Of a stretch of 64,000 nucleotides of DNA, positions 6,585 to 57,353 are shown one piece after another. The notes beneath the pieces were generated by a model that worked only from the letters and a program-made list of their open reading frames with translations, ran no database searches and was not told where the DNA came from. Each line of letters starts with the position of its first letter. Position 1 is the first letter of the stretch. A program made the translations under genes and the position numbers. This DNA comes from Cyanophora paradoxa CCMP329 (Eukaryota; Plantae; Glaucophyta): contig QPMI01000560.1 of NCBI GenBank assembly GCA_004431415.1, forward strand, positions 124,001 through 188,000, in the 5' to 3' direction.

Positions 6585-7012
6585 ATCTGTCGTGTAAATT
6601 TCTGGACTCTTAGGCTTTGGTGATGGGGGCTCGTTTTCACTGGAGCACATGTGGATGCGGATGGATACTGTGTCGGAGCTAGCGGCTAGTCTTGGAGGCC
6701 ATGGCCAAGCTGGCGGTTCGAATTCATGGGGCACGGGCATCAAGAGATATCGTGCATCGATCTAGCTCATCAGATAGCTAGCTAGCTAGAATCGCGGCGC
6801 TGCCGCATAGAGGCAGATCTAGATCTATCGACGTCTGGCGGCGCGCGGCCCGGCGCTAGTGCGAGCGCTGCAGCTGCACAGCCGGAGGCAAGACCGACGG
6901 CTTGGAGCGTGTATACCGGCCCCGTACTTCCCGACAATGGCGCGCCGCCGCGACGCAGGCAAGCGTACCCCCCTGGACAAAGAGGTTGGGGTCGCAGCAA
7001 AACCCCGCCGAA

Positions 7013-8230: not shown

Positions 8231-8896
8231 CAGCCCGGCCTCCCCCTCCCCCTTCCACGCCCGCTTCTCCGCTCCTCGCGTTCTTCCCCCGTGTAATTAG
8301 ATTACCACTCGTAACGTAGCTTTAGTAGCGCAGGTAGGTTGCAAAACCATGATTTGAACTCTTCAGCTCGGATGAACCGGTCGACTGCACCATGGCCAGG
8401 CCAGGCCAGCTACTAGGCAGCTAGCGCTCTAGCAAGCCCCTGCTGCTGGAGCAGCTGCTGGAGCATTCGAACACGTGCACCAATTACGTAGCGGCGCGCT
8501 CCGGAGCCATATGCGCACGCATGGCCACGGGCCACGGCCACCGGCCGCGGTACCTCGCGCTCCGGATCCGCACGGAGGACAAATCGAATTTATCGCGCGC
8601 CCCGACCCGGCCCTGCATTTCGTAGTACTAGTGCGCGCAGCCGCTGAGCGCGGCCGAGCTGCGCGCCCGCTGCGAGATCAGAATGCGAACGACGCTGAGC
8701 GGAGCGAGCGCGAAGTCGCGCTTAAGACTGCAGCACCCTCCCAGCCGCGCGCGCGCGGCGCCGGCCGGCCGCTGAGCAACTGCCAGGCTGTTACCGGAGA
8801 GCCTGCGGTACCCCTCCCTTGTCGGGGTATGCGTGTGCAGACGCTAGAGAACCTAGAGACGCCAGCGCCGCAGCCGATGCCGCCGGTCCGGAAGCG

Positions 8897-11800
8897 ATGA
8901 GTTCAGCACAGAAGTTGAAAGCGCGGCTGCGCGCGAAGGCAAAGGAGGGAGAAGGAGGTGCGATCGGTCCGGCTCCCAGCACTTTCGTCCTGACCCGCTT
9001 TCAGGGCTCGTCGCGGACAGCGCAAAGAAACAGGCGTCGCGTCTGCAGACGTTCTGGCGCGGGCTCTCAATCGATGAGCGCAAAGTGCGGAATGGTACCA
9101 CTGCGTCGCGACTGCCGGCGCTCACGCGTGCATTCGCAGGCATTCCTCCGTGAGCAGGCAGTCTGGAGCGTAGACGGGATCACACAGCAGATCGCGAATT
9201 TCATCCGCGTGCCGGACGATGCGGCGGCGCTGATCGTCGAGGAGGGCCTTGAAGCGCTCCAGGACAGGCTAGCTGCACCCGGTGCGCAGCCGCATTGTCG
9301 TTTAACACACGCGAATCTTATTCGATCGATCCGGCTCGAAAGGGCTGCCAGACTCATGCCCGACGCACAAGAAGGGTAGAATTCCGCTCCGCCCAGAGCC
9401 ACAGAAAGTTGCCGGCTTGCTTCAGTTCTACATCGGTGCCACCGGTCCTCAGAGCCTCCGCCAATTGGGGCTGATGCATAATTGCTGCAGCTGTGGTTCT
9501 CACCGGTCCAGGCCACGGAAACCAGAAGTCGAATGTGCTGCCGGCTCCGCTTGTCGATGCGGGCGAGTGCGGATACACAATCTCCTTCTCAGAGCTCGGT
9601 GCGGTCTTCTGATCGGAGCGGCCCGCCCGGCTGACCTCGCGAGCACCCGCAGCGCTGTTCCGCTGCAGCGATGTGAGCAACAGCGTTCGCGGTCCTTTCT
9701 TTAGTTTTGGCGGCGATGGTTCGCGGTTCTCATTCGTCGTCTTCGTGTCGCCGGAGCTCACAACGCCACCGCAGAAGAGACGATGCAAGTTGCGTCCAGC
9801 ATCGATGGCTCCCGGCCGATATCAACAGCTGGAAAGGCTCATGCCTCCGTTCGGTCAGCGAACATCCTTCTTTTCGTTCGCACTTTAAATGACCTGTTGC
9901 TTCAGACTCATCATGGCGCCCATGGACGCCTGCGAAACCTGGAGCGACTGCTTCGACATGCCGCCCGGAGGTACGGGTCTTTGCGTGTCTTCTCGCAATC
10001 GCTGCTGAGAGCACGCCAGGGCGCGTTCTCATCCACTGGGATTTCGATGCCGAGGAGGTGTGGGCTGCGCGTCACGGCATCGGCACGGGCAACCGCGGCA
10101 AGTCGAAGGTCGTCTGCGGGCCTGCGGTGCGCGGCGCGGGGCGCGGGAGCGCGTTGCGGGGCCTGATGTCCGGGCCGGCGGCAGTTCTACCTCATGGACC
10201 TCTCGTCGGAGGGCGTCTTCGACTGCCACGGCTTCGTGGACCGCAAGGTGGCCGGCGGGCAGTCTATGACGATCCGCTGCGAAGTCGGCCGCGCCGAGAA
10301 GGACCGCCGCTTCTACCTTGTCGACACCCTCCAGGTCCAGCTCTCCTGGTGCGCCCCGCCCCGCCCCGCCCCGCTCCTCGCATCGCTGACGGGAGGCTGG
10401 CAGGGACATCATCGCGCTGTGCTTCGCGCTGCCGATGATCCACCCCGGGGATCCGGGCCTGCACGCCTGCCAGCACTACAAGGAGGGCGACTCCAAGTCC
10501 ATCTGCTCCCTCTGCCGTCTCGTCCGCCTCAGCCGCGAGGACAAGCCCGGCCTCGGCCTCCCCACAGGGGCCCCGGCGCTTGACGGGCCGGCGGCGGCGG
10601 CCTCGGCGCAGCCGGCGGCGGTGCCGCCGGTGCTGGTGGTGGACGAGGAGGGGCGCATGTTCGCGGCGGAGCAGTGGGCGGAGTTCGGGACGGTGCCGGC
10701 GCTGAGCGAGGAGCAGCAGGTGCTGCTGCCGCACCGGGACCTCTCCAGCATGGCACGCGACCGAGCCATCGAGCTCCTCTCTTCCAAGCACGCCCCGCCC
10801 GCCGCCGCCGCACCGGCGCCCTCCCCGCCCCAGCGGCCCGCCCTTCCCGCCCCGGACCTCGAGATGGGCGGCCAGGCCCCCGAGACCGACGGGCCGACCC
10901 CCAACGCCCTCCCCTCCCCCGGCCCCTCCTCCCCGGCGGCCGCCGGGGACGCCCAGGCGCTGCAGCAGCCGCAGCAGAGCCAGGCGCTGGCGGCGGGGGG
11001 GCAGGGGGCGGGGGAGGGCGAGAAGGACGGGCCGCAGTGCTACGGCGAGGTGCTGCGGGCGTACGCGGACACGAACGCGCTGCTGCGGAAGGACCGGCGC
11101 GTGGCGATGGACGTCGAGGCGCAGCTCCGCGGCATCGAGCGCGGCGCGCCCCGCGGCGCCGAGGCGTCCCCCATCCAGGAGCCCATCAACCTCATCGACC
11201 CCGGCCACATCTTCTCCTACCGTGCGCCCCCCGCCCCGCCCCGCCCCGGGCCGCCGCCGACGGGACGCGCGGGCAGGGTTCACGGGGGACGCGATGACGT
11301 TCTGGGCGGGTGGCTACATGCCGCTGGGGGAGCGCGGCATGCTCTTCTCGTCCGAGTTCCGCCTCCTGACGAGCCTCTTCATGCTGACGCGGATGATGGG
11401 GGAGCGCCCGAGCGGGAACGCGTCGACGGGGATCTGCAAGAAGCGCATCCAGAAGGCCCTCGAGATGTACCAGAAGGTCCTCACCGAGGTCCTCGAGAAG
11501 CTCGAGACGGCCGAGTTCCAGCTCGCCATCCCCACCGGCCCGCCCCGCAAGCGGGCCCTGGAGGAGGGCGAGGGCTTCCCCGGCGCCGCCATCCACGAGC
11601 TGCTGCGGCGGCACATCGCGCTGCAGAGCTCGATCTTCTACGAGCACAACCCGACGCAGATCGCCAACCTGCTGCTCCAGCACCACGGCGAGGGCACCGA
11701 CGTCATCGAGTACCTGCAGAAGTGCCGCCTCTGGATCGACGCGCAGCTGCGCATCCGCGAGGGCGAGCTGCGCGCCCAGGAGCTCCGCCTCAAGCTCCTC

Positions 11801-14800
11801 CACAAGATGCTCGAGGCCGACGAGCGCTCCAAGGTCGAGGGCGCCGTCCTCGGCGTCGTCACGCACGCCTGGTACCAGTACTTCGTCAACGCCCTCAAGC
11901 TCCAGTGGCAGGCCCAGCAGGAGAAGATCGCCTCGGCGCTCCTCGCCGAGCCGGCCCCGGAGGCCCCGCCCCGCGACCGCGACTCGCCCCTCCCAGGCGC
12001 TGCCGTCCAGCCGGCCGCCGCCCCCGGGGCCCCCGGCGCCGCCCTGCCCGCGAACAAGGCGGAGAAGCGACGGCGGAAGAAGGACGAGGCGGCTGCCGCG
12101 GCGGCGGCGGGCGACGAGGCGGGGGAGGGGGACGACCGGGCCGCGAGCGGCAGCGGGGCGAACGAGGAGCTGGAGCGCCGCGTGGCCGAACTCGAGGAGG
12201 CGCTGCGCGGGCAGAAGACGGCGGCGCGCGAGGCGCAGCAGCGGGCGGCGGAGACGGAGGAGCGGGCGGCGCAGGAGCGGGCGCGCGTCGAGGCGCTGCA
12301 GCGGCAGCTGGCGGAGCTGCAGACGCGGGAGCGGCAGGCGAACGAGTCGCTCAAGGCGAGCCGCGAGACGAGCGCCGGCCTGCAGAAGCGCCTCGCCGAG
12401 GAGCGCAAGCGCACCGGCGAGCTCGAGGAGCGCGCCAAGAAGGAGCAGCGCCGGGCCGCGGAGGCCGAGGCGGCCCTCGCGGAGCGCAAGGCCGAGGCGC
12501 AGCGCCTCCGCGCCGAGAACGGCCTCCTGCGCGGCCGCTCCGGCCCGCCGCCGCCCTCTCCACCGCCGACTGGGAGCTCGTGCGCAAGGCGGCGGCCGAG
12601 GGCCGGGGTGCCTGGCGGGGCGGCCGCGGGAGGAGGTTGAGCGCCTCGTGGCGCACCTCGCCCAGGCGGCCGTGGCGGTCCAGTCCCTCGCCGAGGCCAC
12701 CCCGGCCCCTCCACCACCCCCGCCCCCGCCTCGAGCACCCCGCCCCCGCCCCGCCGTCCCGCCTCCTCCTCCTCCTCCTCGGCCTCCGCCCCGGCCCCCG
12801 CGCCGGCCGCAGCCCCGAAGGGGCGCCGGCAGCGCCCTCTCCGCCGCCCGCCTTCTCCTCGTCCCTCTCCTCGGCGGCGGCGCCCTTCATCCCGCCCTCC
12901 CGCGTCTCGGGCCTGCCCGCCCCGCACCCCGCAGGCCCCTCGTCGCCCCCGCATCGTCCCCGCCCGTACCCGCAGCCCCGCCCCCGCAGCGGGCCCCGAC
13001 GGGGGCACCTCCCCGGCGGGCCCCGCTCGAGCGCGCCTGCCGGCGACGCCCGGCCTAGCACCTCCTCCCCCGCCTCGTCCCCCGCCGCCGTCCCCCGTCC
13101 CTCACAACCTCCCCCCTCGCCCCTCTCCGCCCCGGCGCACCCCGGCCAGCCACCGCCTCTGCCCCCGCAACAGCAGCAGCAACAGCAGCAGCAGCAGCAG
13201 GGGGTGATCCCGGGCGGCCCGATGCCGCCGCAGCACGTGTACATTCCGCCGGGCGGGCCGCCGGGCGGGCACTACGGGATGCCCCCACTGGCGACGCCGG
13301 CGCCGGGGCCGCAGTACGCGTACGCCGGCCAGGGTTACGCCCCGCCCTACGTCCAGTACGTGCAGGCGCCGCAGTACTACTACTCGGCAGCGCCGCCCGG
13401 CGGCCCCCCGCCTCGCGGCCCCGCCCCCGGTGGCCACCCGCACGGGGGCGCCCCCGGGTGGACCCCCGGCAGTCCGAACCCGCGGCGAGGCGCCCCCTAC
13501 GGGCAGCAGCCGCAGCAGCAGCAGCAGCAGCAGCCGTTCAACGGCCCCGGCGGCACACCGTACCCGCCCATGCAGCAGCAGCAGCAGGGGGCGGTGCAGT
13601 ACGGGGCGCGGGGCGGGCCGGCCGGGGGCGTGGTGCCGGGGGGGTACGGGCAGCAGGGGGTGCTCTACCAGTACGTGGACGGGACGGGCAACTACTACTA
13701 CGTGTCCCCCGTGCAGGCCCAGGCCGCCTCGATGATCCAGCAGCAGCACGTCCAGGGGCACCACACGGGGCCCCCGCCCCCGCCCCACCCCTCCGGCTTC
13801 CCCCAGCAGCAGCCGCCCCTCGCCCCCGCGCCCCCGCAGCAGCAGCTTCAGCAGCAGCAGCAACAGCAGCCGCAGCAGCAGCCGCCCTCCAAGCCGGGCG
13901 AGCATCAGCAGGCGCCGCAGCCTGCCAAGCAGGCGCAGGAGCCTCCGGCGAAGGCGGAGAAGGCGAACGGGGAGGCGGAGGGGCTGGCGCACGCGCACGC
14001 GGAGGGGCCCAGCGCCCCCGCCGCCTCGGCGTCGGGGCCAGGGGGCGACAAGCAGCCGGAGCGGGGCGCCGCCTCGCCGGCGGGCGCGGCGGAGGGCCAG
14101 GGCGCCCAGCAGCAGCAGGCGGCCTCGGGGCCCTCGTCGCCCTCGGCCCACGCGCACCCGCACCCGCACCCCCAGCGCCCCGCCCCCGCCCAGGCCCGCT
14201 CGCAGCCGGCCGCCTCGCCGCCGCCCCAGGCCGAGGCGAGCTCATCGTCGTCCAAGGCGCCAGCAGCAGCAGCGCCGGAGGCAGGCCCGGCGGCACCGGG
14301 GGCCCCCGGGGCGGAGGCGGCGGCGTCATCCTCGTCCTCGGCGGCTGCGGCGGCGGAGGCGGCGGGCCCGCTGCGGGGGATGGATATCCCGGCGGAGCTC
14401 GTGGAGCGCTTCGAGGAGCTCGCCGCCTCCAACACCAAGCAGGAGCGCGAGACCTGCGCCGTCCTCCTCGGCCGCCAGGTCCGCCCCGCTGCCCCCCTCC
14501 CCGTCTATGCTCTCCGGGGCTCCGCGCACCCCCGCTTTCCGCTCTTTCTCCCCGGACGCCGATATGATGACCCTTTATCTGTCAATCCCCTGATTGACGT
14601 GATGATTCTCCAAAATAGTCCTCTAAGAAGTTCTGAAACAGCGTCCGGGTCCGTGGTTTCTTTTGACGCCGCTATGATGACCCTTTATCTGTCAATCCCC
14701 TGATTGACGTGATGATTCTCCAAAATAGTCCTCTAAGAAGTTCTGATGCTGCGTCTTCAGTCCCTCGATCTGCACTCTTTTTATGTGTCTCTATGGCCGC

Positions 14801-15899
14801 CGCTATGATGACCCTTTATCTGTCAATCCCCTGATTGACGTGATGATTCTCCAAAATAGTCCTCTAAGAAGTTCTGATGCCCGGCCTCGCCTCCTAGGCT
14901 TTATTCTCCTTCTATCTTCCTGCTTCGAGCGCTCCAATGAAAAATAGTCCTCTAAGAAGTTCTGACGCTGTGTCTTCAGTCCCTCGATCTGCGCTCTCTT
15001 TTTGTGTGTCTATGGCCGCCGCTATGATGACCCTTTATCTGTCAATCCCCTGATTGACGTGATGATTCTCCAAAATAGTCCTCTAAGAAGTTCTGATGCC
15101 CGGCCTCGCCTCCTAGGCTTTATTCTCCTTCTATCTTTCTGCTTCGAGCGCTCCAATGATGACCCTTTATCTGTCAATCCCCTGATTGACGTGATGATTC
15201 TCCAAAATAGTCCTCTAAGAAGTTCTGAGCACGCGCTCTTTCCCCCGCTTCTCTCGCTGCGGCCCCCGAGCCAGCACCGCGCCGGCGGCGCCTCATTATT
15301 GACCCGCCGCGCGCGCGGCAGACGGGGGCGGGGCGGCTGAGCGTGTCGGCGCTGCTGGTGCCGAAGCAGACGTGCGCGCCGGACCGGTGCGAGACGGCGG
15401 AGGACACGGAGGTGGAGACCCTCGCCATCGCCGAGAAGCACGACCTCCAGGCGCGCCGCCGCCTCCCCCGCCCCGCCCCGCCCCGCCCCGCGCCTCTCAC
15501 CGGGGCCCCCCTGGGCGGCAGGTGATGGGGTGCATCCACACGCACCCGTCGCAGGGCTGCTTCCTCTCGTCGATCGACATGCACAACCTGCTGGGGTACC
15601 AGCTCCAGCTCCGCGAGGCCGTCTCCATCGTCGTCGCCCCCAAGCACGAGAAGCGGTGCGCCGCCCCCGGCCCCGCCCGCCCCCTCGAGGTGGCTCGCCG
15701 CTGAGGGCGCGGGGCCGGCAGAGTCGGCCTCTTCCGGCTGACGGACAAGGGGACGGAGATCATCCGGGCGTGCAAGCTGGCGGACTTCCACGAGCACCGG
15801 GGCGTCCCCGACAGCGCCATCTACGAGGACTGCCCCCACATCACCCTCACCCCGGGCGCCCCCGGCCGGGCCCCGCTCGCCGTCTTCGACCTCCGCTAG
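8897..15899 (+). CDS. Large protein: unknown N-terminal region, coiled coil, PAM2-like motif, P/Q/Y/G-rich region and C-terminal AMSH/STAMBP-type JAMM (MPN+) deubiquitinase domain; hosts the snoRNA array
   Basis: The last exons give SNTKQERETCAVLLG...LVPKQ...IHTHPSQGCFLSSIDMH...EAVSIVVAPK...GLFRLT...C...FHEH...VFDLR*, a complete AMSH JAMM signature. Joining the 5' exons (8897-10430) into the same gene is inferred. Confidence 0.7.
14564..14636 (+). ncRNA. SNORD61: Box C/D snoRNA, U61/SNORD61-like with a second 18S guide, copy 1
   Basis: C box ATGATGA, D' CTGA, C' GTGATGA and D CTGA. The D guide TAGTCCTCTAAGAAGTT pairs with 18S AACUUCUUAGAGGGACUA and the D' guide ATCTGTCAATCC pairs with 18S GGAUUGACAGAU. 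Flanking stem CCCGGACGC/GCGTCCGGG. Confidence 0.92.
14674..14746 (+). ncRNA. SNORD61: Box C/D snoRNA, copy 2
   Basis: Identical 73-nt core with flanking stem GACGC/GCGTC. Confidence 0.9.
14805..14877 (+). ncRNA. SNORD61: Box C/D snoRNA, copy 3
   Basis: Identical 73-nt core with flanking stem GGCCG/CGGCC. Confidence 0.9.
14937..14965 (+). pseudogene. Internally deleted snoRNA copy (44 nt missing)
   Basis: ATGA is joined directly to AAAATAGTCCTCTAAGAAGTTCTGA, losing most of the C box, the D' guide, D' and C'. Confidence 0.8.
15024..15096 (+). ncRNA. SNORD61: Box C/D snoRNA, full copy 4
   Basis: Identical 73-nt core; the flanks duplicate those of copy 3. Confidence 0.9.
15156..15228 (+). ncRNA. 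SNORD61: Box C/D snoRNA, full copy 5
   Basis: Identical 73-nt core with flanking stem GAGCGC/GCGCTC. Confidence 0.9.
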
Positions 15900-16183: not shown

Positions 16184-18635
16184 CTAGGCGGTGGCGGCGG
16201 CGTGGAGGGCGGCCTCGGAGGCGGCGACGGTGGCGGCGAGGTCGGCGGCGAGGCGGTTGCGGGCGGCGGTGAGCCAGCCGCGGGCGACGTGCCCCGGGAG
16301 GCCCTCGAGCGCCTCGACCTCGCGCAGGGCGCGCAGCAGGTCGCCCCGCACGAGGGCCCCTCGGCGCGCGCCAGCACGGCCTCGACGCCGGCACCCGGGG
16401 CCTCCCCCGGCGGCTCGGCGACCTTGAGGCGGGAGGCGAGGGAGGCGACGGCGTAGGCGATGGGGCCCGCCCCCTCGGGGATCATCGCCGCCCGCCGCGC
16501 CTCGGGCGCCATCGCGCGGAAGCGCTCCAGTAGCTCCGCCCGCGTCGCCACGCCGCCCATGGCGCCCGGCGGGACGGAGAGGACGGCGGCGCCGGCGAGG
16601 GCGCGGCCGGTCTCGTCGCCGGCGGCGCCGGCGCGGCGGAGGAGGGCGATGGCGGGGGCGAGGGGCTTGCGGGACTCGAGGGCGTCGCGGGCGGCGAGGG
16701 CGGCGAGGGCGAGGCCCTGGGAGCGGTGCGCGAGCTGCTTCCACTCGACGTCGGCGTGGAAGGCGCGCTCGATGGCGACCAGCTGCGCGGTGAGGTCCTC
16801 GATCACCGCCGCCCGCTCCACGCTCTCCCGCAGCAGCTCCTCCCCGAGCCGCCGCTCCGCCTCGGCGCGCGTCCCCTCGAGCTCCGCGGCGTGCGCCTCG
16901 CCCATCTCGCGCGCCTGCCGCACCAGCGCGCGCTCCACCTGCGCCCGCAGCCTGGCCCGCCCCGCCCCGCCCCGTCGGCGTCCACCCTCTCCCCGGCTAC
17001 CCCCCCCCCCAGGGGGGGTACGCACTCTTCGACGACGGCGTCGAGGCGGCCCTCGAAGCGCGCGTTCACGCGCTCCTCCACGCCCCGCGCGTGCTCCGCC
17101 GCCTGCCCGAGCCGCGCCGGCCGCCGTCAGAGCGGGAGGGGGCGGGTGGCGGGCGGGGGCGGGGCGGGCCTGGAGGGCGAGGAGGCGGCGGGCGGCCTCC
17201 TCGTCCGAGAGGCGCTGGAGCCGCAGCGCCTCCAGCAGCCGCGCCGCCTCCGCCCGCGCCAGCCCCTCCAGGTGTCCCCGCAGCGCCGCCAGCTCCTCCG
17301 GCACCGCCGCCAGCGCCGCCGCCTCCTCCGGCAGCGCCGCCAGCGCCGCCGGCGCCGGCAGCTCCTCCGGCCTCCCCTCCGCCCCAGCCGCTCTGCCGCC
17401 GGGCGCGTGAGCCGCCGCCGGGGGCGCCGCGGGGCGGCGGGGCGGGGCGGGGCGGGGCGGGGCGGGGCGGGCGGCACCGATGACGTCGGCGGGAGCGGCT
17501 CGAAGCGGACCTCGATGGGCGTGCCCGCGGGGACGTGCGGGACGAGCTTCTCCGGCGTCACCACCTCCGACACGATCCGCTCCGCTGCCCCCGCCCCGCC
17601 CCGCTCGCTCGCTTGCTCGCTCGGGGGCCCACCAGCGGCCGCCGCGCGCGCGCGGCGGCGGGGAGGGGAACGCACCAACGACGTCGGGAGTCTGCTTCTG
17701 AGGTGCCTCCTTCTGCTCCGGCGCCGGCGCCGGAGCGGCAGGCGCGTGCGTCTCCTCGGCCGCGGCGGGCGACTCGGCGAGCTGCGCGGCGGCGGCGTGC
17801 TCCGCCGCGGCCGACGCCGCCGGCTCGGGCTCCCGCGGCGCGTCCTCGTCCTTGTCCGCGTCGGGCTCTGACGCCGAGCCCGGTGGCGGCATGTGCACCG
17901 CCTCCGCCGCCGCCGCGGCCGCCGGCCTCGCCTCCTCGGCCTCCGCCGCCGCCTCCGCCGCCTTGGGCGCGGCCTTGGGCGCCTCAGGGGCGGCCTCCAG
18001 TGCCTGCGCCGGCGCCGAGTTGGCGCTCGTCGCGTTGCGCCAGAGGTCGGCGATCGGTCCCGGCAGCTGCGACGCGATCTCCTCCCTGTAGGCCTGCCCC
18101 CGCGCGTCAGAAGCCGTCCGCGCGGGCAGCGCTTCGCGAATCCGCGGCCGCTATCTCGGCGGGGGATGCCGCCGCAGCCGCCCCCAGCGCAAACGAGCCC
18201 CGCACTGGGCCGACCGCAAGCATGCAGCTTCCCCCTCGGCTAGCTCTGAAGGGCGCGTGGACGGGTCCGCAGTTCACGAACCGGGTCGCGCTGCGCTCTT
18301 GCGCCAACGCTAATCACCGACGCCGTGCCGAGAATCGTCGCGCCGAAAAGGAGACGGCCCCATGTGATTCGCGCTGGCGGCGGGGCCTGCGCCTCCGCCC
18401 GCGCGCCTGTCGGTCCGGCGTTTGTCGCGCGAGCTCCGCCAGCGGAGCCGCCGGCGGAGCCGCCCGCTGATGAGCTGCTCGACCCGCTTTGCCCGGTAGA
18501 TGTGCTCGAACTGCGCAGGAAGGCCTGTCGCGCAGCACAGTCAGGTCGCGCGGCTTCGACCCAGCGCGACGCGGCAGAGTCTTCCGAATGGCTTGCGCTC
18601 ACCCGGAACGCCGCACGGGGCACGCCGCGCGCCAT
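16184..18635 (-). CDS. MIC60: MICOS subunit MIC60/mitofilin
   Basis: Arg-rich presequence, a single TM segment (ITWGRLLFGATILGTASVISVG), a coiled coil and a C-terminal mitofilin domain (GVATRAELLERF...AMIPEGAGPIAYAVASLASRLKV...VLARAE..LVRGDLLRALREVEALEG...WLTAARNRL). One apparent 1-bp indel near 16358. Confidence 0.88.
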
Positions 18636-20228: not shown

Positions 20229-22092
20229 CTACGAGTGCCCGAAGGAGGGGGGGAGGGTCTCCCCGAGGAGGGCGTCGAGCTCCTCGGCGGTGAAGCAGGG
20301 CGTCGCCGGCTCCATCAGGGGCATGGGGCGGCAGGGCCCCGCCGCGCCCCCGCCCCCGCCCCCGCCCTTGCACGGGGCGCCCTCGTCGGGCCAGCAGGCC
20401 GCCTGGCCGCAGGCGGCGGGGGCGGTCGGGGTGGCGAAGGGCGGGGAGTCGGCCGGGGAGCCGAGGGAGCTGGAGGGGCTCGCGACGGCCGCCCCGCACG
20501 AGGGGGCGCCCGGCGGGACCGCCACCGACGGCGCGGACCGCGTGCGCGCCAGCGGCCGAGGCGGCGCCGCCATCCCCCCCGACGCCTGCGGCCGCCCCGA
20601 GGGAAACACGGGCCCCGCCGAGGGGGGCGGACGGCTGACGTTGAGCGGCCGCGTGCGCGAGAGGGGGGCACGCGAGCGGGCGGCAACGGGGGGCGGAGGC
20701 ATGCGGGGGCCGGCGGGTGCGGAGGGCGCAGGGGGGCAGGCTGGGGGAGCTTGGCGGGGCGGCGGGGCTTGGAGCGGCGGCGGGGCTTGGAGAGAAGACG
20801 GAGCTTGGAGACGCTGCTGCTGCGTCTGCAGCTGCTGCTGCGTCTGCAGCAGCTGCTGCGAATGCGGCTGCTGCTGCGTCTGCAGCTGCTGCTGCGTCTG
20901 CAGCTGCTGCTGCGAATGCGGCTGCTGCTGCGTCTGCAGCTGCTGCTGCGTCTGCAGCAGCTGCTGCGAATGCAGCTGCTGCTGCTGCGAATGCGGCTGC
21001 TGCTGCTGCTGCGGCTGCAGTTGCAAATGCGGCTGCTGCTGTTGCGGCTGCAGTTGCAACTGCGGCTGCGGCTGCATTTGCAACTGCGGCTGCTGCGGCT
21101 GCGGCTGCGGGGTGATAGAGCGGGTCGCGCACGCAAAGCCTGCGTCGCCGGCGGTCACGGCGCCGCGAGGCCGGGAGGCGCGCGGGGGCGACGGACCGGG
21201 GTCGGGGCTCGGCTCGGTGTCGACATCGAGGTAGACCGGCCAGCTCTGCTGGTAGCCACCCGGGGGGAGCGGAGCAGCTCCCGCGTGCTCCATCGGCGGC
21301 CGGCGGGGCGGCGGCGCGGCCATCGGCATTGGCTGCTGGGGCGCCGCCGGTCCGAGCTCGAAGCCGTCCGGTCGGCGCTTGTACGGGGGATAGTCGACCG
21401 GCGACGTGGCATCGGGCGGGTCCTTGCGCTTTGGCGCGTACACGGGGGCGGCACAGGCGGCGGGGGGCGAGAAGGCCGGCACCGGCGGGCGCTGCGGAAG
21501 CTGCGCCGGCTGACCGCACGGCCCGAAGCCCAGACCGCCGGAGTGATCAAGAAGGTTCGAAGCCCTGCATTCGAACGCATTTAGAGGCTCGTGGACGTCA
21601 ACACGGAGCAGGGACGCACGGTCCAACAGGCTGACAGGAGGCCATGGAGAACGGTGGAGGCAGGTAGAGCCCGCGCATTGCAAGCTACAGACAGCGAGTG
21701 AGCGATGAATGATCGTCTCGGAATCCGAGACCACTGCGGCCTTGCGCACCTCCTGCTGCAAGGTGCTCAGGGTTCGAGCGAGGCCCGCGCTGAGCAGGAA
21801 GTGATGGACGCGTGCGAGGAAGTTGGTCCCTTGCTGAACATTTACTCCTGGAGCGTTCGACGGCGCCTCGCCGTGTGCTTGCCATGGACTCGGAGGCGCG
21901 CCACCTCCTAGCCCAGACGCGCACGCGCAGCAGATCAGCACTGCAGTGAAATATTATTGATACGGATAACGCACCACTGCGCTGAACCATGTAGACCCCG
22001 CCCGCGAACCGAGCGGTCGCCCCGGGCCAGGTATTTGGTGCTGTCACACCAACCGCGGCATCGCCCGCGCTCGGGCCGGCGTAGTTAAACAT
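20229..22092 (-). CDS. LisH-like motif plus Q/P-rich protein (paralogue A); 5' end uncertain
   Basis: FLARVHHFLLSAGLARTLSTLQQE fits LisH. It has a Q-rich tandem tract and an acidic-hydrophobic tail (FTAEELDALLGETL). Confidence 0.55.
20813..21109 (-). repeat. Coding CAG-rich minisatellite (QQQLQT / QQQPHS units)
   Basis: Repeated ctgctgctgcgtctgcag and ctgctgcgaatgcgg units on the + strand. Confidence 0.85.
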
Positions 22093-22482
22093 CGCTTTGA
22101 GAGCGTTGCGAGCTCCTCAGCCGCGTGGCGAGCTCCAGTAACGCCAGGAGCGGCCAGGCTCGGGCGCCCAGCAGATGAGCTCTTCAGTCCTCCCGGCGGT
22201 TCGCGCAGAAATCTCCCGACTCGTTGAGGTAGCGGTCGTGTGCTACTAGCTGCTGGGACCACTTGGTCGTATCGCGGCCGGGGGGAAACACGCGCTTGTG
22301 GGGCTCCTTAGACGGTGAGCCTGAGTACGCTGTACCCCCACTCCCTCCCTCCCCCGGCCAGCCTCGCTTACCAACGAGCCGGGGCCGCGCGCGCGCGCGC
22401 GCACCCTCGTGATCATGAGTTCGCGACGCGACGTGGACTTTCTTCACGCGCGGACGCGCACGCGTACGGTTCGTGTGCATAT

Positions 22483-22791
22483 TGGGCGGCGCCCGGCCAG
22501 GCCCCCGAGACCGACGCGTACGGGCCGACCCCCAACGTTAACGCCCTCGAGCTCCCCTCCCCCGGCCCCTCCTCCCCGGCGGCCGCCGGGGACGCCCAGG
22601 CGCTAGCGCTGCAGCAGCCGCAGCAGAGCCAGGCGCTGGCGGCGGGGGGGCAGGGGGCGGGGGAGGGCGAGAAGGACGGGCCGCAGTGCTACGGCGAGGT
22701 GCTGCGGGCGTACGCGGACACGAACGCGCTGCTGCGGAAGGACCGGCGCGTGGCGATGGACGTCGAGGCGCAGCTACGCGGCATCGAGCGC
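22483..22791 (+). pseudogene. Duplicated exon fragment of 10865-11142
   Basis: 278-bp parent versus 309-bp copy. They are identical except for one substitution and five small insertions (7+6+6+6+6 bp). Confidence 0.92.
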
Positions 22792-23053
22792 CGGGGGGTG
22801 CGCCGGGGGCGATGGCTGCGGCGCGCGAGGGCGGCGCGTGAGCCGGAGGGGCGCGTGATTTTCCTTTCGCGGCCCCGGTCACCTCGAGGCCCTCCAGGGC
22901 GGCGCGCAGCGACGAGGCCGCCGCCAGCTGCAGCGCCCTGTCGTCGCCGTCAAGCAGGTAGATACGGGTGCATACCCAGGGGATGGCGGGGATGGACGAG
23001 AGCGCACACGCGTACGGGCGATGCCGGCGCAGCAGCAGACTGGCGATGCAGCG

Positions 23054-23187
23054 TACCCCCAACCGCTAGCACCGGTACCCCCATCGTAATCGCAACATAC
23101 CCCCAACCGCTAGCACCGGTACCCCCATCGTAATCGCAACATCGTAATCGCAACATCGTAATCGCAACATCGTAATTTAATCGCAAC
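23054..23187. repeat. 44-bp tandem duplication with nested 14-bp repeats (TCGTAATCGCAACA)
   Basis: 23054-23097 equals 23098-23141. The 14-mer occurs three times in tandem at 23128-23169, followed by a degenerate copy. Confidence 0.9.
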
Positions 23188-23875
23188 TTGGCAACATCGA
23201 TATCGATATCGTAGCTGAAAAATATATAATCGATGGCCAGTCAGCTCACGTAAACGTACGCGTCGGCTTGCCGAGTCGAGCTCATCATGGCATGACTCAT
23301 GAGTCTCACGACCGTTGGACTCCGGGATCCTTTGCGCACGACGCCTGCACCTGCTTCACATTGCATTGCAACTTTCCAATTTGGCAACGGTTGCATTATA
23401 ATTACAAGTCACGATTCACGAGTCACGAGCACTTCCCCAAGTTCCTAAACATGAGCTAGCGCTGCACTGGCGCCGTGCGCACGCAAATACTTACGCGCGC
23501 GCTCGGTCGATATGTATCTACGACGCCCACGTGCACGTGGCGAGGAGCTAGCCGAGTGTCAGCTTGGCGTATCAGCAAGTCTACAGTGAAACGAATACGA
23601 CTGTCGGCTTTAGCACTATTACTACGAATAGAAAAGAGTTACAAGAACGAGATGATGGAAACATGAAAAGCGCATAATGAATCAATCTGCGCGGCCTTGA
23701 TCGCTTGAAACTGCGACATACAAAAACGGGAAGCGACAAGGTCCATAGAAAACTGCCTTCGAATTCTACAAGATGCGCGGCGCTGAACAAACGCGGCGAG
23801 TCTCGGTCGAATCTTGCACATGCATCCTATACAGGAGGAAAGGTCGCGAGCGGCCCGGCGCGCGGGTGCTTGGGG

Positions 23876-26073
<2,198 letters not shown>

Positions 26074-38495: not shown

Positions 38496-39229
38496 AGGGC
38501 TCGGCGACCGCGGCCCGGACCCCCCGCCCCCTCGAGACCTCTTCTCGTTCCGAGAAGGCTCCGCAGGCCCGGATTCGGGGGTCCACATGTACATGCTTCG
38601 CTCTGGACAGACCCCGCTCGCAATCGGCCGCATCACATTTCAAACACGCAGTGTTTCAAGCTTTTGATGCAAGTCGAGTATATGCCGCTTGCTCAGTATT
38701 TGAGTTCCATGCTACAGTCACACTGAGTGTTCGATTTATGCAGAGCTTTCAACTTGGCAATACCGTAGTAGGCCTAGGCTCTCTATCTGAGACTCTTGCA
38801 ATCATTTGAATTTGAGACTTTGAGACTTGCCGATCGGTTTCCGACTGCCCTCTCCCGGGCTCCCAGGCTCCCGGAGAGTCCCTCTGATGCATTCTTTTGC
38901 CAGCAAGCTAAAGTTGACAAGTCGACGCATACCACTCAGTGTGAATGGCCCAGCAAGCTTTAGTTGACTTAAGCCAGCAACTGGCCGCAGGCTGGCAAGT
39001 TTACAAGTTAAGGCGAGCCTCGCGATCCGAGGGCCAGACTCTGATCATGCCATCCCAATGCCATGAATGTGCACGTGCACGTGCCAAGTTAACGTTCAAC
39101 GAGGCACTGCGGCACTCAGTGACTGCCAGGCCCTGAGGCCCTGAGGCTGCGGCACTCCTCATCATGGCATCATGGCATTACTGAGTCATGATCATGCATA
39201 TGACACGGGCGCCCACGGTTACACGCCGG

Positions 39230-52988: not shown

Positions 52989-53534
52989 GCGCCCCCGGGC
53001 CCGGGCCCGACGTCGACCGGCCCTCCATGGCCACCAAGGCCTAGGCCTATCCACGTGCACACCCTTGGCCTCCTTAACGTGTAATGTGTGCCTGCATTCG
53101 TTGTAATTGCATTCGTTGTCCTTGCGAAGTTGCATTAAATATTCGTTCCGGATCCACGCGGAGCATCGAATATAGCTCAAAGGGGGACGCTAGTAAGCCT
53201 TGAAGCCTAGCTTTAGGCGGATACACTGATACAGGCGCCCCTAGGCCCAGGATTGCGATCGAAGGGATTGTCGAAGGGACCATCGGACTCCGGTCCGCCG
53301 GGGCCAGGCCGGGATCCGATGATCACCGCTGAGCCGGCCGTGGCATCCGTGCAGGCCGTTGGACCGTTGCTAACTGGGGCCGGACCAGGGGCTGGCAGTG
53401 GCAAATTAGCCGCGGCCGGGCCGCGAATCATCGGCTCATGTGCATGGGCCAAGCCTAGGATCATGATCATCAAGCCTTGCCAAGTTGAAGACTAGCTCTA
53501 AGTGAGGTAGAATGCAGAGCTGGAAGGAGTGGGT

Positions 53535-56500
53535 CTAGAGGGAGATGAGGGAGGGGCTGGAGCCCCTGGCGGGCCCCCCCCGGCCCAGCGAGAGGCCGTC
53601 CTCGCCCTCGCCCTCGCCCTCCGCCCCCTCCTCCTCGCCCTCCTCGCCGTCCAGGGAGGCGGGGCCGGCGGGGGCGGGGCCGGCGGCCGGGGGCGGGCCG
53701 GGGGCGTCGGGGTCGAGGAGGCCGGAGCCGTGCGCGAGCTGCCGCCGCACGAGGCTCCGGTAGAGGCCCCCGGGCCGCCCCAGCAGCTCCTCGTGCCGCC
53801 CCTGCGCCAAGCGTAAGCTAAGCTTCAGCCACGCCAAGCTAAGCTCAGGAATGCGGGCCTGCTCGACGATGCGGCCGCCGGAGACGACGCAGACGAGGTC
53901 GGCGTCCTTGACGGTGGAGAGGCGGTGGGCGATGACGAGGACGGTGCGCCCCGCCATCAGCCGCTGCAGCGCCTCGTGCACCACGTGCTCGCTCTCCGCG
54001 TCCAGCGCCGACGTCGCCTCGTCGAGGAGGAGGATGCGCGGGTCCATCAGCAGCGCCCGCGCGATGGCGATGCGCTGCTTCTGCCCCCCGGAGAGGCGGA
54101 TGCCGCGCTCGCCGACGAGGGTCCCGTACTGCTCGGGGAAGTGCGTGATGAAGTCGTGCGCGTTCGCCTGCCGCGCCGCCTGCCGCGCCCCTCAGCCTCA
54201 GCCTCAGGAGAGCTCAGAGCTCAGGGCGGGAGGGGGCGCACGCGCTCCACGGCGGCCTGGTCGGCGCGGGCCTCGTCGTGAACGCCGTACCGTATGTTCT
54301 CCTCCACGCTCGCCGCGAACTGCAGAGGAAGGGAGGGAGTGAGGGGCGGAGCCGGGCGGGGCCGGGGCGGGGCGGGGCGGGGCGGACGAGGACGGGCTCC
54401 TGGGAGACGAGGGCGACGTGGCGGTGGAGCCAGCGGGGGTCGAGCTCGCGCAGGTCCACCCCGTCCACCGTGATCCGCCCCGCGCTCGCCTCGTAGAAGC
54501 GCTCCAGCAGGTTCACCACCGTCGTCTGTGCGTCTCGCCCCGTCAGCTCAGCTCCAGCGCCGCGCAGGGAGGAGGCGAGGGCGCCCACCTTGCCGCCCCC
54601 CGAGGGGCCCACCAGGGCGACGACCTGCCGGCGGGTGGGGCCGGTCAGGGGCCGGGGGCGGGAGGGGCAGGCGGGGGCGGGGGCGGGGCCGGGGGCGGGC
54701 CTGGCCGGGGCGGAGGTGGAGGGAGACGCCCGAGAGGACCTCGCGCTCGGGGCGGGCGGGGTACGCGAAGGCCACCCCCTCGAAGCGCACCTCCCCCGCG
54801 CACCCCGCCGGCTGCAGCCCGCCCTCGATGTTCACCGCCGGCTGCGCGCGGGTGAGATGAGATGAGGGACGGGGCGGGGCGGGGCGGGGCGGGGCGGGGC
54901 GGGGCGGGGCGCGGGCCTTGCGCTCGAGGAGCTCGAAGACGCGGGCGCCGGCGCCGGCGGCCTTCGCGAAGTCGGCGTAGATGCGCGAGATGCCCCCGAG
55001 CGCTGGCCCCGGCCCCTCAGAAGAGAAGAGGAGGCTGCGGGGCGGAGCGGGGCGGGGCGGGCGGGCGGGGGCGGGCGGGGCGCGCCGGTGCCGACGAAAA
55101 TCATGTAGAGGACGAAGGAGAGGAGCCGCCTGCGCGCGCGGGCGCGACGGCCGCGGCGAGGGGCGGAGGTCAGCGGCGGGGCCGCGGGCTCTCAGGCTCC
55201 CAAGCGGGCGGGCGGACCCCGGGGAGAGGAGGCCGTCGAGGGCGAGGCGGCCGCCGTAGAAGAGGACGAGCACGACCGCCACCGTCGACACCGCCGACAC
55301 GAAGCCTGAGGAGGGGGCGGGGGCGCTTCGGCGTGAGCGCGCGCGCGCTGGAGACGGAGGGAGGGCGGGCGGGCGAGCGCACAGTCGAAGGCGGCGTAGC
55401 CGACGGCGGTGCGCATTGCCATCCTGCGCGCGCCCCGTGAGCGCGGGCTGGGGCGGGAGAGGAGGAAGGGAAGCGGGCGGGCCTGTAGGCCTCGTCGACG
55501 CGGGCGGAGTAGCGCTCGAGCTCGCGCGCCTCCCGGCTGAACGAGCGCACCTGCGCCCCGCCCCGCCCCGCCCGCCCTCAGCCCCCGCGCAGGGGGGCCT
55601 TGCAGTGAAGGAAAAGGGGCGCGCGGTGCGGATGTTGCTGATGGCCTCCTCCGCGGCCACCGTCGCCAGCGCCAGCGCCTCTTGAACCTCTGCGGTCCCA
55701 GGGGGGGGTGGGGGGGGGCGGGGAGAGGGGCGAGGGGCGAGGGGGGCGAGGGGGCGCGCACGGCGGCCGACGGCCTTCATGAAGCGCCCGAAGCTACGCG
55801 CAGGAGGTCAGTGCTACTCTTAGACTGCATCCGAGCGGGAGAGTCACCTTACGGCGCCGATGGAGACGGCGGGGGTGACCGCCAGCATGAGCTGCGAGGC
55901 CGGGCTCAGCTGGGCGGGGGCCGCGGGCCGAGGGGCGGGTGGGGCACGAGGGTGAGGCGCCAGGAGATGGAGAGGAGGAGGACGAGGCCGGCGGCCGCCT
56001 GCCCCCGCACCCCCTCAGCGCCGCGCGGAGGGCGGGGCCGGGCGCCGGGGGCGGGCCTGGAGGGCGGAGCGGAGGAGCTGCGCGATGTTCTGCGTCACCG
56101 CGCTCTGGATGACCTGCCCGCGGCCCCGGTCAGAGGGGCCACGGGTGCTGGGCGGGGCCCCGGGGCGGGCGGGGCGGCGAGACGGGCCTGGCAGTCGCCG
56201 GAGAGGCGGTTGACGAGCTCGCCTGTGCGCGTCGTGTCGAAGAAGGCGACCTCCTGCGCCACCACCGCCCCGAAGAGCCGCCTGCGCGGCGCAGCTCAGC
56301 CGCCAAGGCTGGGCTTGGAGTGGCCGCGGGGGCGGGCTGGCGCGCTTGCGGAGGCGGGCGACGACGCGCTCCGACGCGAGGGAGAGGAGGTAGGAGCGGA
56401 AGAAGGAGGCCACCCCGCCCGCCAGCGCGATCCCCACCAGCGCCAGCATGGCGGCCCGCAGCTGCGCCAGCCCTGCCCCAAGCCTCGATGAGGGCGCACG

Positions 56501-57353
56501 GGGGCGGGGCGGGGCGGGGCGGGGCGGGCCGGCGTCGCGGGAGGGGCTGCTCCCGATCACGTCGATGATGCGCCCGATGAAGGCCGGCAGCGCCAGCGTC
56601 GAGCCGGCCGCTGCCGCCCGACCTCAGCGGCCGCGGCGGCAGCGGCGGGGGCGGGGGGGCGAGGCGGACAGGCGAGGGCGCAGAGGCAGCCGGCGGCGAT
56701 GACGTGCGCCTCGGGGCGCGCGAGGGCCGCCAGCTGGCCCGGCTTCAGCGGCTCCGCCTCCTTCTTCCCCTTCTCCTCCTCCGCGCCCCCGCCCACGGCC
56801 TCCGCGCGCGCCGCGCCCGGCCCCGTCTCCTCGTCCCCCGCCAGCGCGCTGTAGCCCGCCCCGGGGCGCCCGCCCGCCGCCGCCCGGTCCCCCGGTTCGT
56901 CGCTGCCGCGTGCAGCCTGCCGGCCGGGCCGCGGCCGGCGCCGGGTCGGGTTGGTGGGGCTCGAGACAGGCGAGGGGGGCCGCGGGGAGGGCGCACGCGA
57001 AGGCGACGGCCTGCAGAAGGACGAAGAGGGCACTGTAGGCGACGGCGGCGGCCGCAACGGCGCTGCCGCCGCCCCCCGCCGGCGCCGCGGCCGCCCCCTT
57101 GGCGCACAGGGCCGCACCGAAAACGGCGGCCACGGCGGCGACGTAGAGAATCTGGCGCCGGCTGTAGCGCTCGCGCACGGGCCAGACGGCCGGGAGGAAG
57201 CAGATGGCGCGAAGAAGTGCGAGTGCCAGGAGGTCCGCCGTCGACGACGAGAAGCTGTATACGCTCTGCCCCCCGCCGTCGCCCCTAAGCCCGGAGAACA
57301 AGCGGCGAGCACGGGCGGCGCACCGTATCCTCGTCCGAAGCGACGTAGAGCAT
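53535..57353 (-). CDS. ABCB half-transporter with an extra N-terminal membrane domain (ABCB9/TAPL- or ALS1-like)
   Basis: Walker A GPSGGGK|TT, Q-loop VSQEP, signature LSGGQKQR, Walker [12 protein letters not shown] and H-loop IAHRLST. Also [10 protein letters not shown] and [14 protein letters not shown]. The N-terminus reads [17 protein letters not shown]. Confidence 0.92.

Follow-up and report, generated by a model that had tools for sequence, protein, structure and literature searches.

The hAT, Transib, MULE and RAG systems form hairpins on flanking DNA that are opened by host enzymes, and end joining then leaves footprints (PMC5499845). For mPing, an element with a 3-bp target-site duplication, microhomology within the duplication directs repair after excision (PMC4561436). 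Pack-CACTA elements are known to carry gene fragments (bioRxiv 10.1101/342816). Templated insertions, reverse-complement ones among them, are also described as products of Pol theta (PMC5068794, PMC4912351).

We identified a series of short palindromic insertions in a 64-kb stretch of Cyanophora paradoxa DNA (hereafter, the window). In these insertions, a triplet X is followed by its reverse complement X' and then by X again (X-X'-X), which adds 6 bp. A second form, X-C-X'-G-X, adds 8 bp. We refer to both forms as scars. They make up about 9% of one 1.4-kb intergenic stretch.

The scars share features with several described systems. Like hAT, Transib and MULE footprints and the P nucleotides of V(D)J recombination, they contain loopless, perfect inverted copies of the flank between what would be retained copies of a target duplication (PMC5499845). 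However, hAT, Transib and MULE footprints vary in length and content and are associated with target duplications of 5–9 bp, whereas the duplication would be 3 bp here and one fixed-length product (+6 or +8) dominates. P nucleotides also vary in length (0–4 nt), whereas only the 3-nt inverted form is enriched in the window. The scars parallel mPing (PIF/Harbinger) excision repair in that the repair product would be fixed by microhomology from a 3-bp duplication (PMC4561436). Unlike mPing, which excises precisely and has a TTA/TAA target, they keep both triplets together with an inverted one, and X is arbitrary. Insertions made by polymerase theta or template switching are similarly templated by nearby sequence, sometimes as its reverse complement, but their microhomology priming, variable length and usual loop or spacer are not seen here.

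CACTA/En-Spm elements offer a further parallel. They duplicate 3 bp of target, show little preference for particular target sequences and have 5'-CACT...AGTG-3' termini, with C as the first and G as the last nucleotide, in keeping with the 3-mer rule and the C...G spacers. We know of no biochemical demonstration of flank-hairpin chemistry for CACTA transposases, and an incomplete literature search found no report of X-X'-X as a standard CACTA footprint. Similarly, no published description of the scar pattern was found in the 2019 genome paper or in full-text literature searches, the coverage of which was incomplete. Hairpin footprints are already known; a single fixed product at such density represents a new form of them.

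A copied exon fragment carries five stereotyped insertions

We globally aligned a copy region (22460-22810) with its parent region (10840-11160). The aligned features are as follows.

10865-11142, plus strand: parent segment, mid-exon of a JAMM/MPN-domain gene (residues 476-568), in the short, ancestral form
22483-22791, plus strand: copied exon fragment of 309 bp, intergenic, defined by global alignment, blastn and read-derived contigs
22487-22497: +7 insertion CGGC-GCC-CGGC, which would shift the parent reading frame
22514-22522: +6 scar ACG-CGT-ACG, adding Ala-Tyr in the parent frame
22534-22542: +6 scar AAC-GTT-AAC, adding Val-Asn in the parent frame
22546-22554: +6 scar CTC-GAG-CTC, adding Glu-Leu in the parent frame
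22602-22610: +6 scar GCT-AGC-GCT, adding Ala-Leu in the parent frame
22776: sole substitution, C in the parent and A in the copy

Copy and parent share 277 of 278 aligned bases, and all five insertions lie in the copy. The alignment thus bears out the preliminary description of this DNA, which had reported one substitution and five insertions, four of them exact X-X'-X events and the fifth a +7 variant. Homology to the parent starts at 22483 and ends at 22791. A blastn comparison of 21500-24000 against the 64-kb window matched only the copy and parent pair, with no other copy detected.

The rule X → X-revcomp(X)-X is exact in four of the five insertions. The fifth follows the rule with one additional C, since GGC-GCC-[C]-GGC is an equally valid parsing, in which a regular +6 scar has gained a C within a C run. 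At the insertion sites, the triplet X is single in the parent and retained on both sides in the copy. X-X' and X'-X form perfect 6-bp palindromes at each of the four exact sites, and these palindromes extend into the flank in 2 of 8 cases, which is chance level. The X-C-X'-G-X form is absent among the five events. A random 6-nt insertion beside X would equal X'X with a probability of 1/4096, and this outcome was seen four times. All five insertions fall within the first 97 of the 278 parent positions (0.349^5 = 0.005, one-sided).

The copy is authentic and its parent has the ancestral form

The stretch is contained in 14 DNA-type runs of one organism (2012 to 2024). We compared Logan contigs of four public runs (2012, 2019 and two of 2024) over 21200-25200. 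Contigs of all four runs cover 21200-22581, 22552-22775 and 22746-23083, free of gaps and of any differing letter, and a single 2012 contig corresponds to 21200-22775, covering all five insertions. The contig breaks fall where the copy equals the parent over a length exceeding the k-mer, as expected for two-copy sequence. The preliminary description had called for the insertions to be confirmed in reads. These read-derived contigs match the copy base for base, which indicates that the copy is real DNA. No polymorphism was seen in the copy across the four runs, which probably all represent one laboratory strain, so that this uniformity carries no information on the frequency of scar formation.

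An assembly or sequencing artefact is ruled out by the four agreeing read sets (2012-2024) and by the window-wide pattern described below. An engineered polylinker is ruled out by the same pattern and the independence of the four read sets. The copy resembles a polylinker (with MluI/BsiWI-, HpaI-, XhoI/SacI- and NheI-type sites) because each X-X'-X makes two overlapping palindromic hexamers.

In a protein search, the parent segment matched a single protein, EukProt EP00741 Cyanophora paradoxa tig00021127_g18732.t1, at 100% identity. This protein has 1773 aa and contains JAB/MPN domains, and matches to its exact 12-mers span 8897-15852 of the window. The ATG at 10864 is ruled out as a start codon, as it encodes an internal methionine (residue 476 of the 1773-aa protein).

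The polarity of the insertions follows from the parent gene; for outgroup polarity, the protein search returned only Cyanophora paradoxa's own protein. The parent reading frame runs unbroken over all five insertion sites. Because this frame is continuous in an annotated exon and would be disrupted by the +7 insertion, the ancestral state is the short form, and it was the copy that acquired the insertions. The converse polarity, in which the long form is ancestral and palindromes were deleted from the parent, is ruled out because it would frame-shift the annotated exon. The copy itself is a captured gene fragment that is ectopic, frame-shifted by +7 and situated between other genes. Its surroundings are intergenic DNA of lower GC content, flanked by two glutamine-rich paralogues on the minus strand. 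These tandem paralogues (20229-21941 and 23876-25943, both minus strand) have a LisH-like N-terminus and carry long CTG/CAG arrays with a 9-nt period (20750-21150 and 25250-25560).

X-X'-X scars are enriched across the window

We identified 221 X-X'-X 9-mers in the window, 184 of which remain once dinucleotide runs are removed. Expected counts were obtained from order-2 Markov simulations within 2-kb blocks.

X-X'-X, 3-mers: observed 184, expected 59.4 ± 8.1 (z = 15, 3.1-fold)
X-X'-X, 2-mers: observed 351, expected 353 (0.99-fold)
X-X'-X, 4-mers: observed 14, expected 8.8 (1.6-fold)
X-X'-X, X with A or T: observed 85, expected 13.5
X-X'-X, G/C-only X: observed 99, expected 48 (about 2-fold)
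X-C-X'-G-X: observed 33, expected 11.7 (z = 6.8)
X-C-X'-G-X, X with A or T: observed 18, expected 1.4

The 3-mer excess supports the view that the five insertions belong to a process acting across the window; the further idea of a dominant genome-wide mutation class goes beyond what a single 64-kb window can show. Six-bp palindromes in general show no enrichment in the window (1998 versus about 2000-2070 expected); only the triple form is. Among spacer forms of the type X-a-X'-b-X, just one of the 16 nucleotide pairs (a = C, b = G) is enriched, and the A/T and T/A single-nucleotide forms have zero occurrences in the window. Dinucleotide (CA...TG) and trinucleotide spacer forms gave no signal in the window, and one-sided spacer forms are not enriched there (X-X'-C-X, 38 observed versus 29.6 expected). 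Partial forms with one or two inverted nucleotides (+4, +5) also lack enrichment, occurring at 0.7-0.9 of expectation.

The form X-X'-X'-X, which corresponds to a blunt join of two extended hairpins, occurs 5 times versus 0.2 expected. This excess is only suggestive, and two of the five occurrences lie in CTG/CAG repeat. X triplets are diverse, with 21 of the 28 A/T-containing classes used, and X is without sequence specificity. A control form consisting of X, reversed X and X was contaminated by shifted registers of true scars and was unusable.

Distribution and tempo of the scars

Scars are dense in several intergenic stretches (6699-6868, 8390-8757, 22386-23760, 38585-39194 and 52994-53461). 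Clustering beyond the level of 200-bp bins is not significant in the window. The stretch that contains the copy has the following features.

22386-23760: scar-rich intergenic zone holding the copy, with 16 X-X'-X loci, 3 X-C-X'-G-X loci and the +7 variant
22410: scar immediately upstream of the copy, in unique DNA, TGATCATGA
22460: scar immediately upstream of the copy, in unique DNA, ACGCGTACG

This zone holds about 20 scars, or ~1 per 69 bp, and the density inside the copy is 1 per 62 bp. Five scars are found within 111 bp of a copy that is only 0.36% diverged. A hotspot, a recent burst or rapid gain and loss of scars could explain why the copy already matches the scar density of its surroundings.

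The preliminary description had further claimed that a stereotyped, templated insertion outpaces point substitution in the copy. The insertions are indeed stereotyped and templated by the flank. The claim about tempo fares less well, as it compares only five events with one: for the insertion-to-substitution ratio of 5:1, the exact 95% interval extends from about 0.6 to about 240. In the A/T class, the excess of one-mismatch scars (about 132) is larger than that of perfect scars (about 72), a crude ageing count that is too rough for a rate but suggests that many scars are old or imprecise. Given the wide interval and the larger number of one-mismatch scars, the outpacing of substitutions holds only locally and is uncertain.

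Among other duplicates in the window, no X-X'-X scars were found in a five-unit snoRNA array, which is under selection. This array (14557-15228) comprises five 80-nt C/D-box-like units that are 96-100% identical, are spaced by 110-219 nt and are apparently intronic in the JAMM/MPN gene. The long open frame of the parent gene contains an ACG-CGT-ACG sequence at 13316-13324, read as Tyr-Ala-Tyr-Ala. In-frame scars may survive in low-complexity coding DNA.

Proposed transposon excision and rival explanations

On balance, we lean towards the five insertions being excision footprints of cut-and-paste transposons with a 3-bp target-site duplication, the CACTA/En-Spm type being the most likely. An element would insert at a triplet X to give L-X-[element]-X-R, where L and R are the left and right flanks. 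Excision would then seal each flanking end as a hairpin with X at its tip, and off-centre opening by host enzymes would produce L-X-X' and X'-X-R. The X' extensions can pair because both derive from one duplicated triplet; pairing over 3 nt followed by gap filling would yield L-X-X'-X-R (+6). If the first nick instead fell one nucleotide inside an element with 5'-C...G-3' ends, the product would be L-X-C-X'-G-X-R (+8). The copied fragment would have landed in an intergenic zone in which such events are frequent, gaining five footprints and a single substitution.

Several properties of the scars are consistent with this mechanism. X-X'-X needs X on both ends beforehand, because a single hairpin gives just L-X-X'-R, and a 3-bp target-site duplication would supply exactly the X needed at both ends. 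The same model would cover both insertion rules and explain why they are strand-symmetric, specific to 3-mers and fixed in length, the last of these because repair would lock on the 3-nt microhomology provided by the target duplication. The C...G spacers, alike on both strands, are the trace expected from a terminal-inverted-repeat element with C...G ends. Zero-loop palindromes without extra flank complementarity point to a covalent hairpin rather than polymerase priming. The broad spectrum of X fits CACTA-type insertion and not families specific for TWA or TTAA.

The preliminary description had offered two candidate processes, hairpin repair or excision footprints at a 3-nt duplication and double template switching. 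The former fits better, on account of the 3-mer-specific excess, the fixed C/G spacers, the lack of a +4/+5 excess and the absence of any need for flank complementarity. A donor transposon was not found in the window. Scanning its 64 kb for inverted repeats with a 3-bp duplication gave 160 of 6099 pairs, which is chance level, and no CACT[AG]...[CT]AGTG element with a duplication was identified in it; donors may lie elsewhere. No series of filled, empty and scarred sites was seen in the window. Excision footprints also require a strong hotspot or burst, as five insertion-excision cycles would have occurred in 111 bp of a young copy. Variable hairpin opening should yield +4 and +5 footprints as well, and the fact that neither is enriched counts against the footprint reading. 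Finally, the C...G rule leaves the +7 variant unaccounted for.

A transposon-independent host nuclease, such as a domesticated RAG/Transib/CACTA-type transposase or some other enzyme that forms hairpins, could alternatively make a 3-nt staggered cut in open chromatin, seal hairpins and generate X-X'-X through end joining. We consider this explanation unlikely but credible. Zero-loop palindromes and 3-mer specificity are equally expected from it, it is consistent with the lack of a donor element in the window and with the concentration of scars in intergenic, promoter-like DNA, and the occurrence of five events in so young a copy suggests that the rate is locally high. However, a single hairpin-forming cut would stop at the +3 product, with the second X needing a prior target duplication, and the C and G fixed in the +8 form are not flank-templated and are most simply element termini. 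These spacers are also left unexplained by fold-back double template switching by a repair polymerase (Pol-theta-like or through microhomology-mediated break-induced synthesis) during copying, which we view as rather improbable. Under template switching, the duplication event itself would have produced the five scars, within its unstable initial 100-130 nt. The confinement of all five events to the first 97 of 278 positions (p about 0.005), the single substitution and the retention of the intervening parent sequence in order all favor this idea, and reverse-complement templated insertions are known for Pol theta (PMC5068794, PMC4912351). Yet unique DNA (22410 and 22460) and the other intergenic zones of the window are scarred too, a loopless 3-nt hairpin cannot prime a polymerase, flank microhomology is not needed and the insert length is fixed at +6 or +8.

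The scarring of unique DNA likewise weighs against a repeat-targeted defence, analogous to RIP, that writes palindromic insertions into duplicated DNA. Such a defence would account for a copy that is heavily hit for its age next to an untouched parent, but selection shields the parent anyway, neighboring unique DNA equals the copy in scar density and the fragment is short (278 bp). We therefore regard it as very improbable. The probability that no mutational process is involved, and that the pattern stems from artefact, engineered sites, chance or an ancestral long form, is close to negligible. Although the copy has the look of a polylinker, the chance probability of the insertions is about 1e-14, the pattern is window-wide, four read sets agree and a long ancestral form would shift the frame of the annotated exon.

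Implications for genome evolution in Cyanophora paradoxa

If the scars are transposon footprints, Cyanophora paradoxa holds an unusually legible record of past excisions, in which one fixed product lets insertion-excision events be counted site by site. Footprints alone would then be able to form a visible share of intergenic DNA, and many palindromic hexamers would have been created near promoters. The scars would also constitute indirect evidence for CACTA-type excision through flank hairpins.

If the scars are transposon-independent, they would represent a new class of templated indel mutation. A tentative and rather unlikely proposition is that a dedicated break-and-repair activity writes the scars by forming hairpins, with no transposon insertion needed; a domesticated transposase that works on open chromatin would be one example. 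Were it true, this activity would locally outrun base substitution, and it would keep assembling promoter and intergenic DNA from palindromes. As +6 insertions preserve the reading frame, low-complexity coding regions would gain dipeptides from it as well. Indel models, aligners and repeat finders applied to Cyanophora paradoxa should count +6 and +8 X-X'-X events as single mutations.

Other repeats in the window

We also observed tandem arrays of the scar forms. Period-6 arrays are present at 23196-23210 (ATC-GAT-ATC-GAT-ATC) and 39069-39083 (GTG-CAC-GTG-CAC-GTG), and period-8 arrays at 39128-39146 (AGG-C-CCT-G-AGG-C-CCT-G-AGG) and 39160-39178 (CAT-C-ATG-G-CAT-C-ATG-G-CAT). These arrays could be repeated events at one triplet or the result of slippage. 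Two 11-mers of the +8 form recur at intergenic loci: CAA-C-TTG-G-CAA at three separate positions (23184, 38750 and 53477) and CAT-C-ATG-G-CAT at 23283, 39160 and 39168. Such recurrence could point to a preferred target or to a regulatory word that the loci share.

The 23060-23200 region contains a 44-bp tandem duplication and, after it, a 14-nt repeat in four units; GCTAGC and ACC-GGT-ACC are both present in each copy of the duplication. Contig depth in this region is about 7x that of the flanks, which indicates that this repeat is multi-copy in the genome. Finally, (GGGGC)n arrays of 6-9 units occur on the plus strand at several gene borders (2330-2373, 17430-17475, 54864-54917 and 56491-56531).
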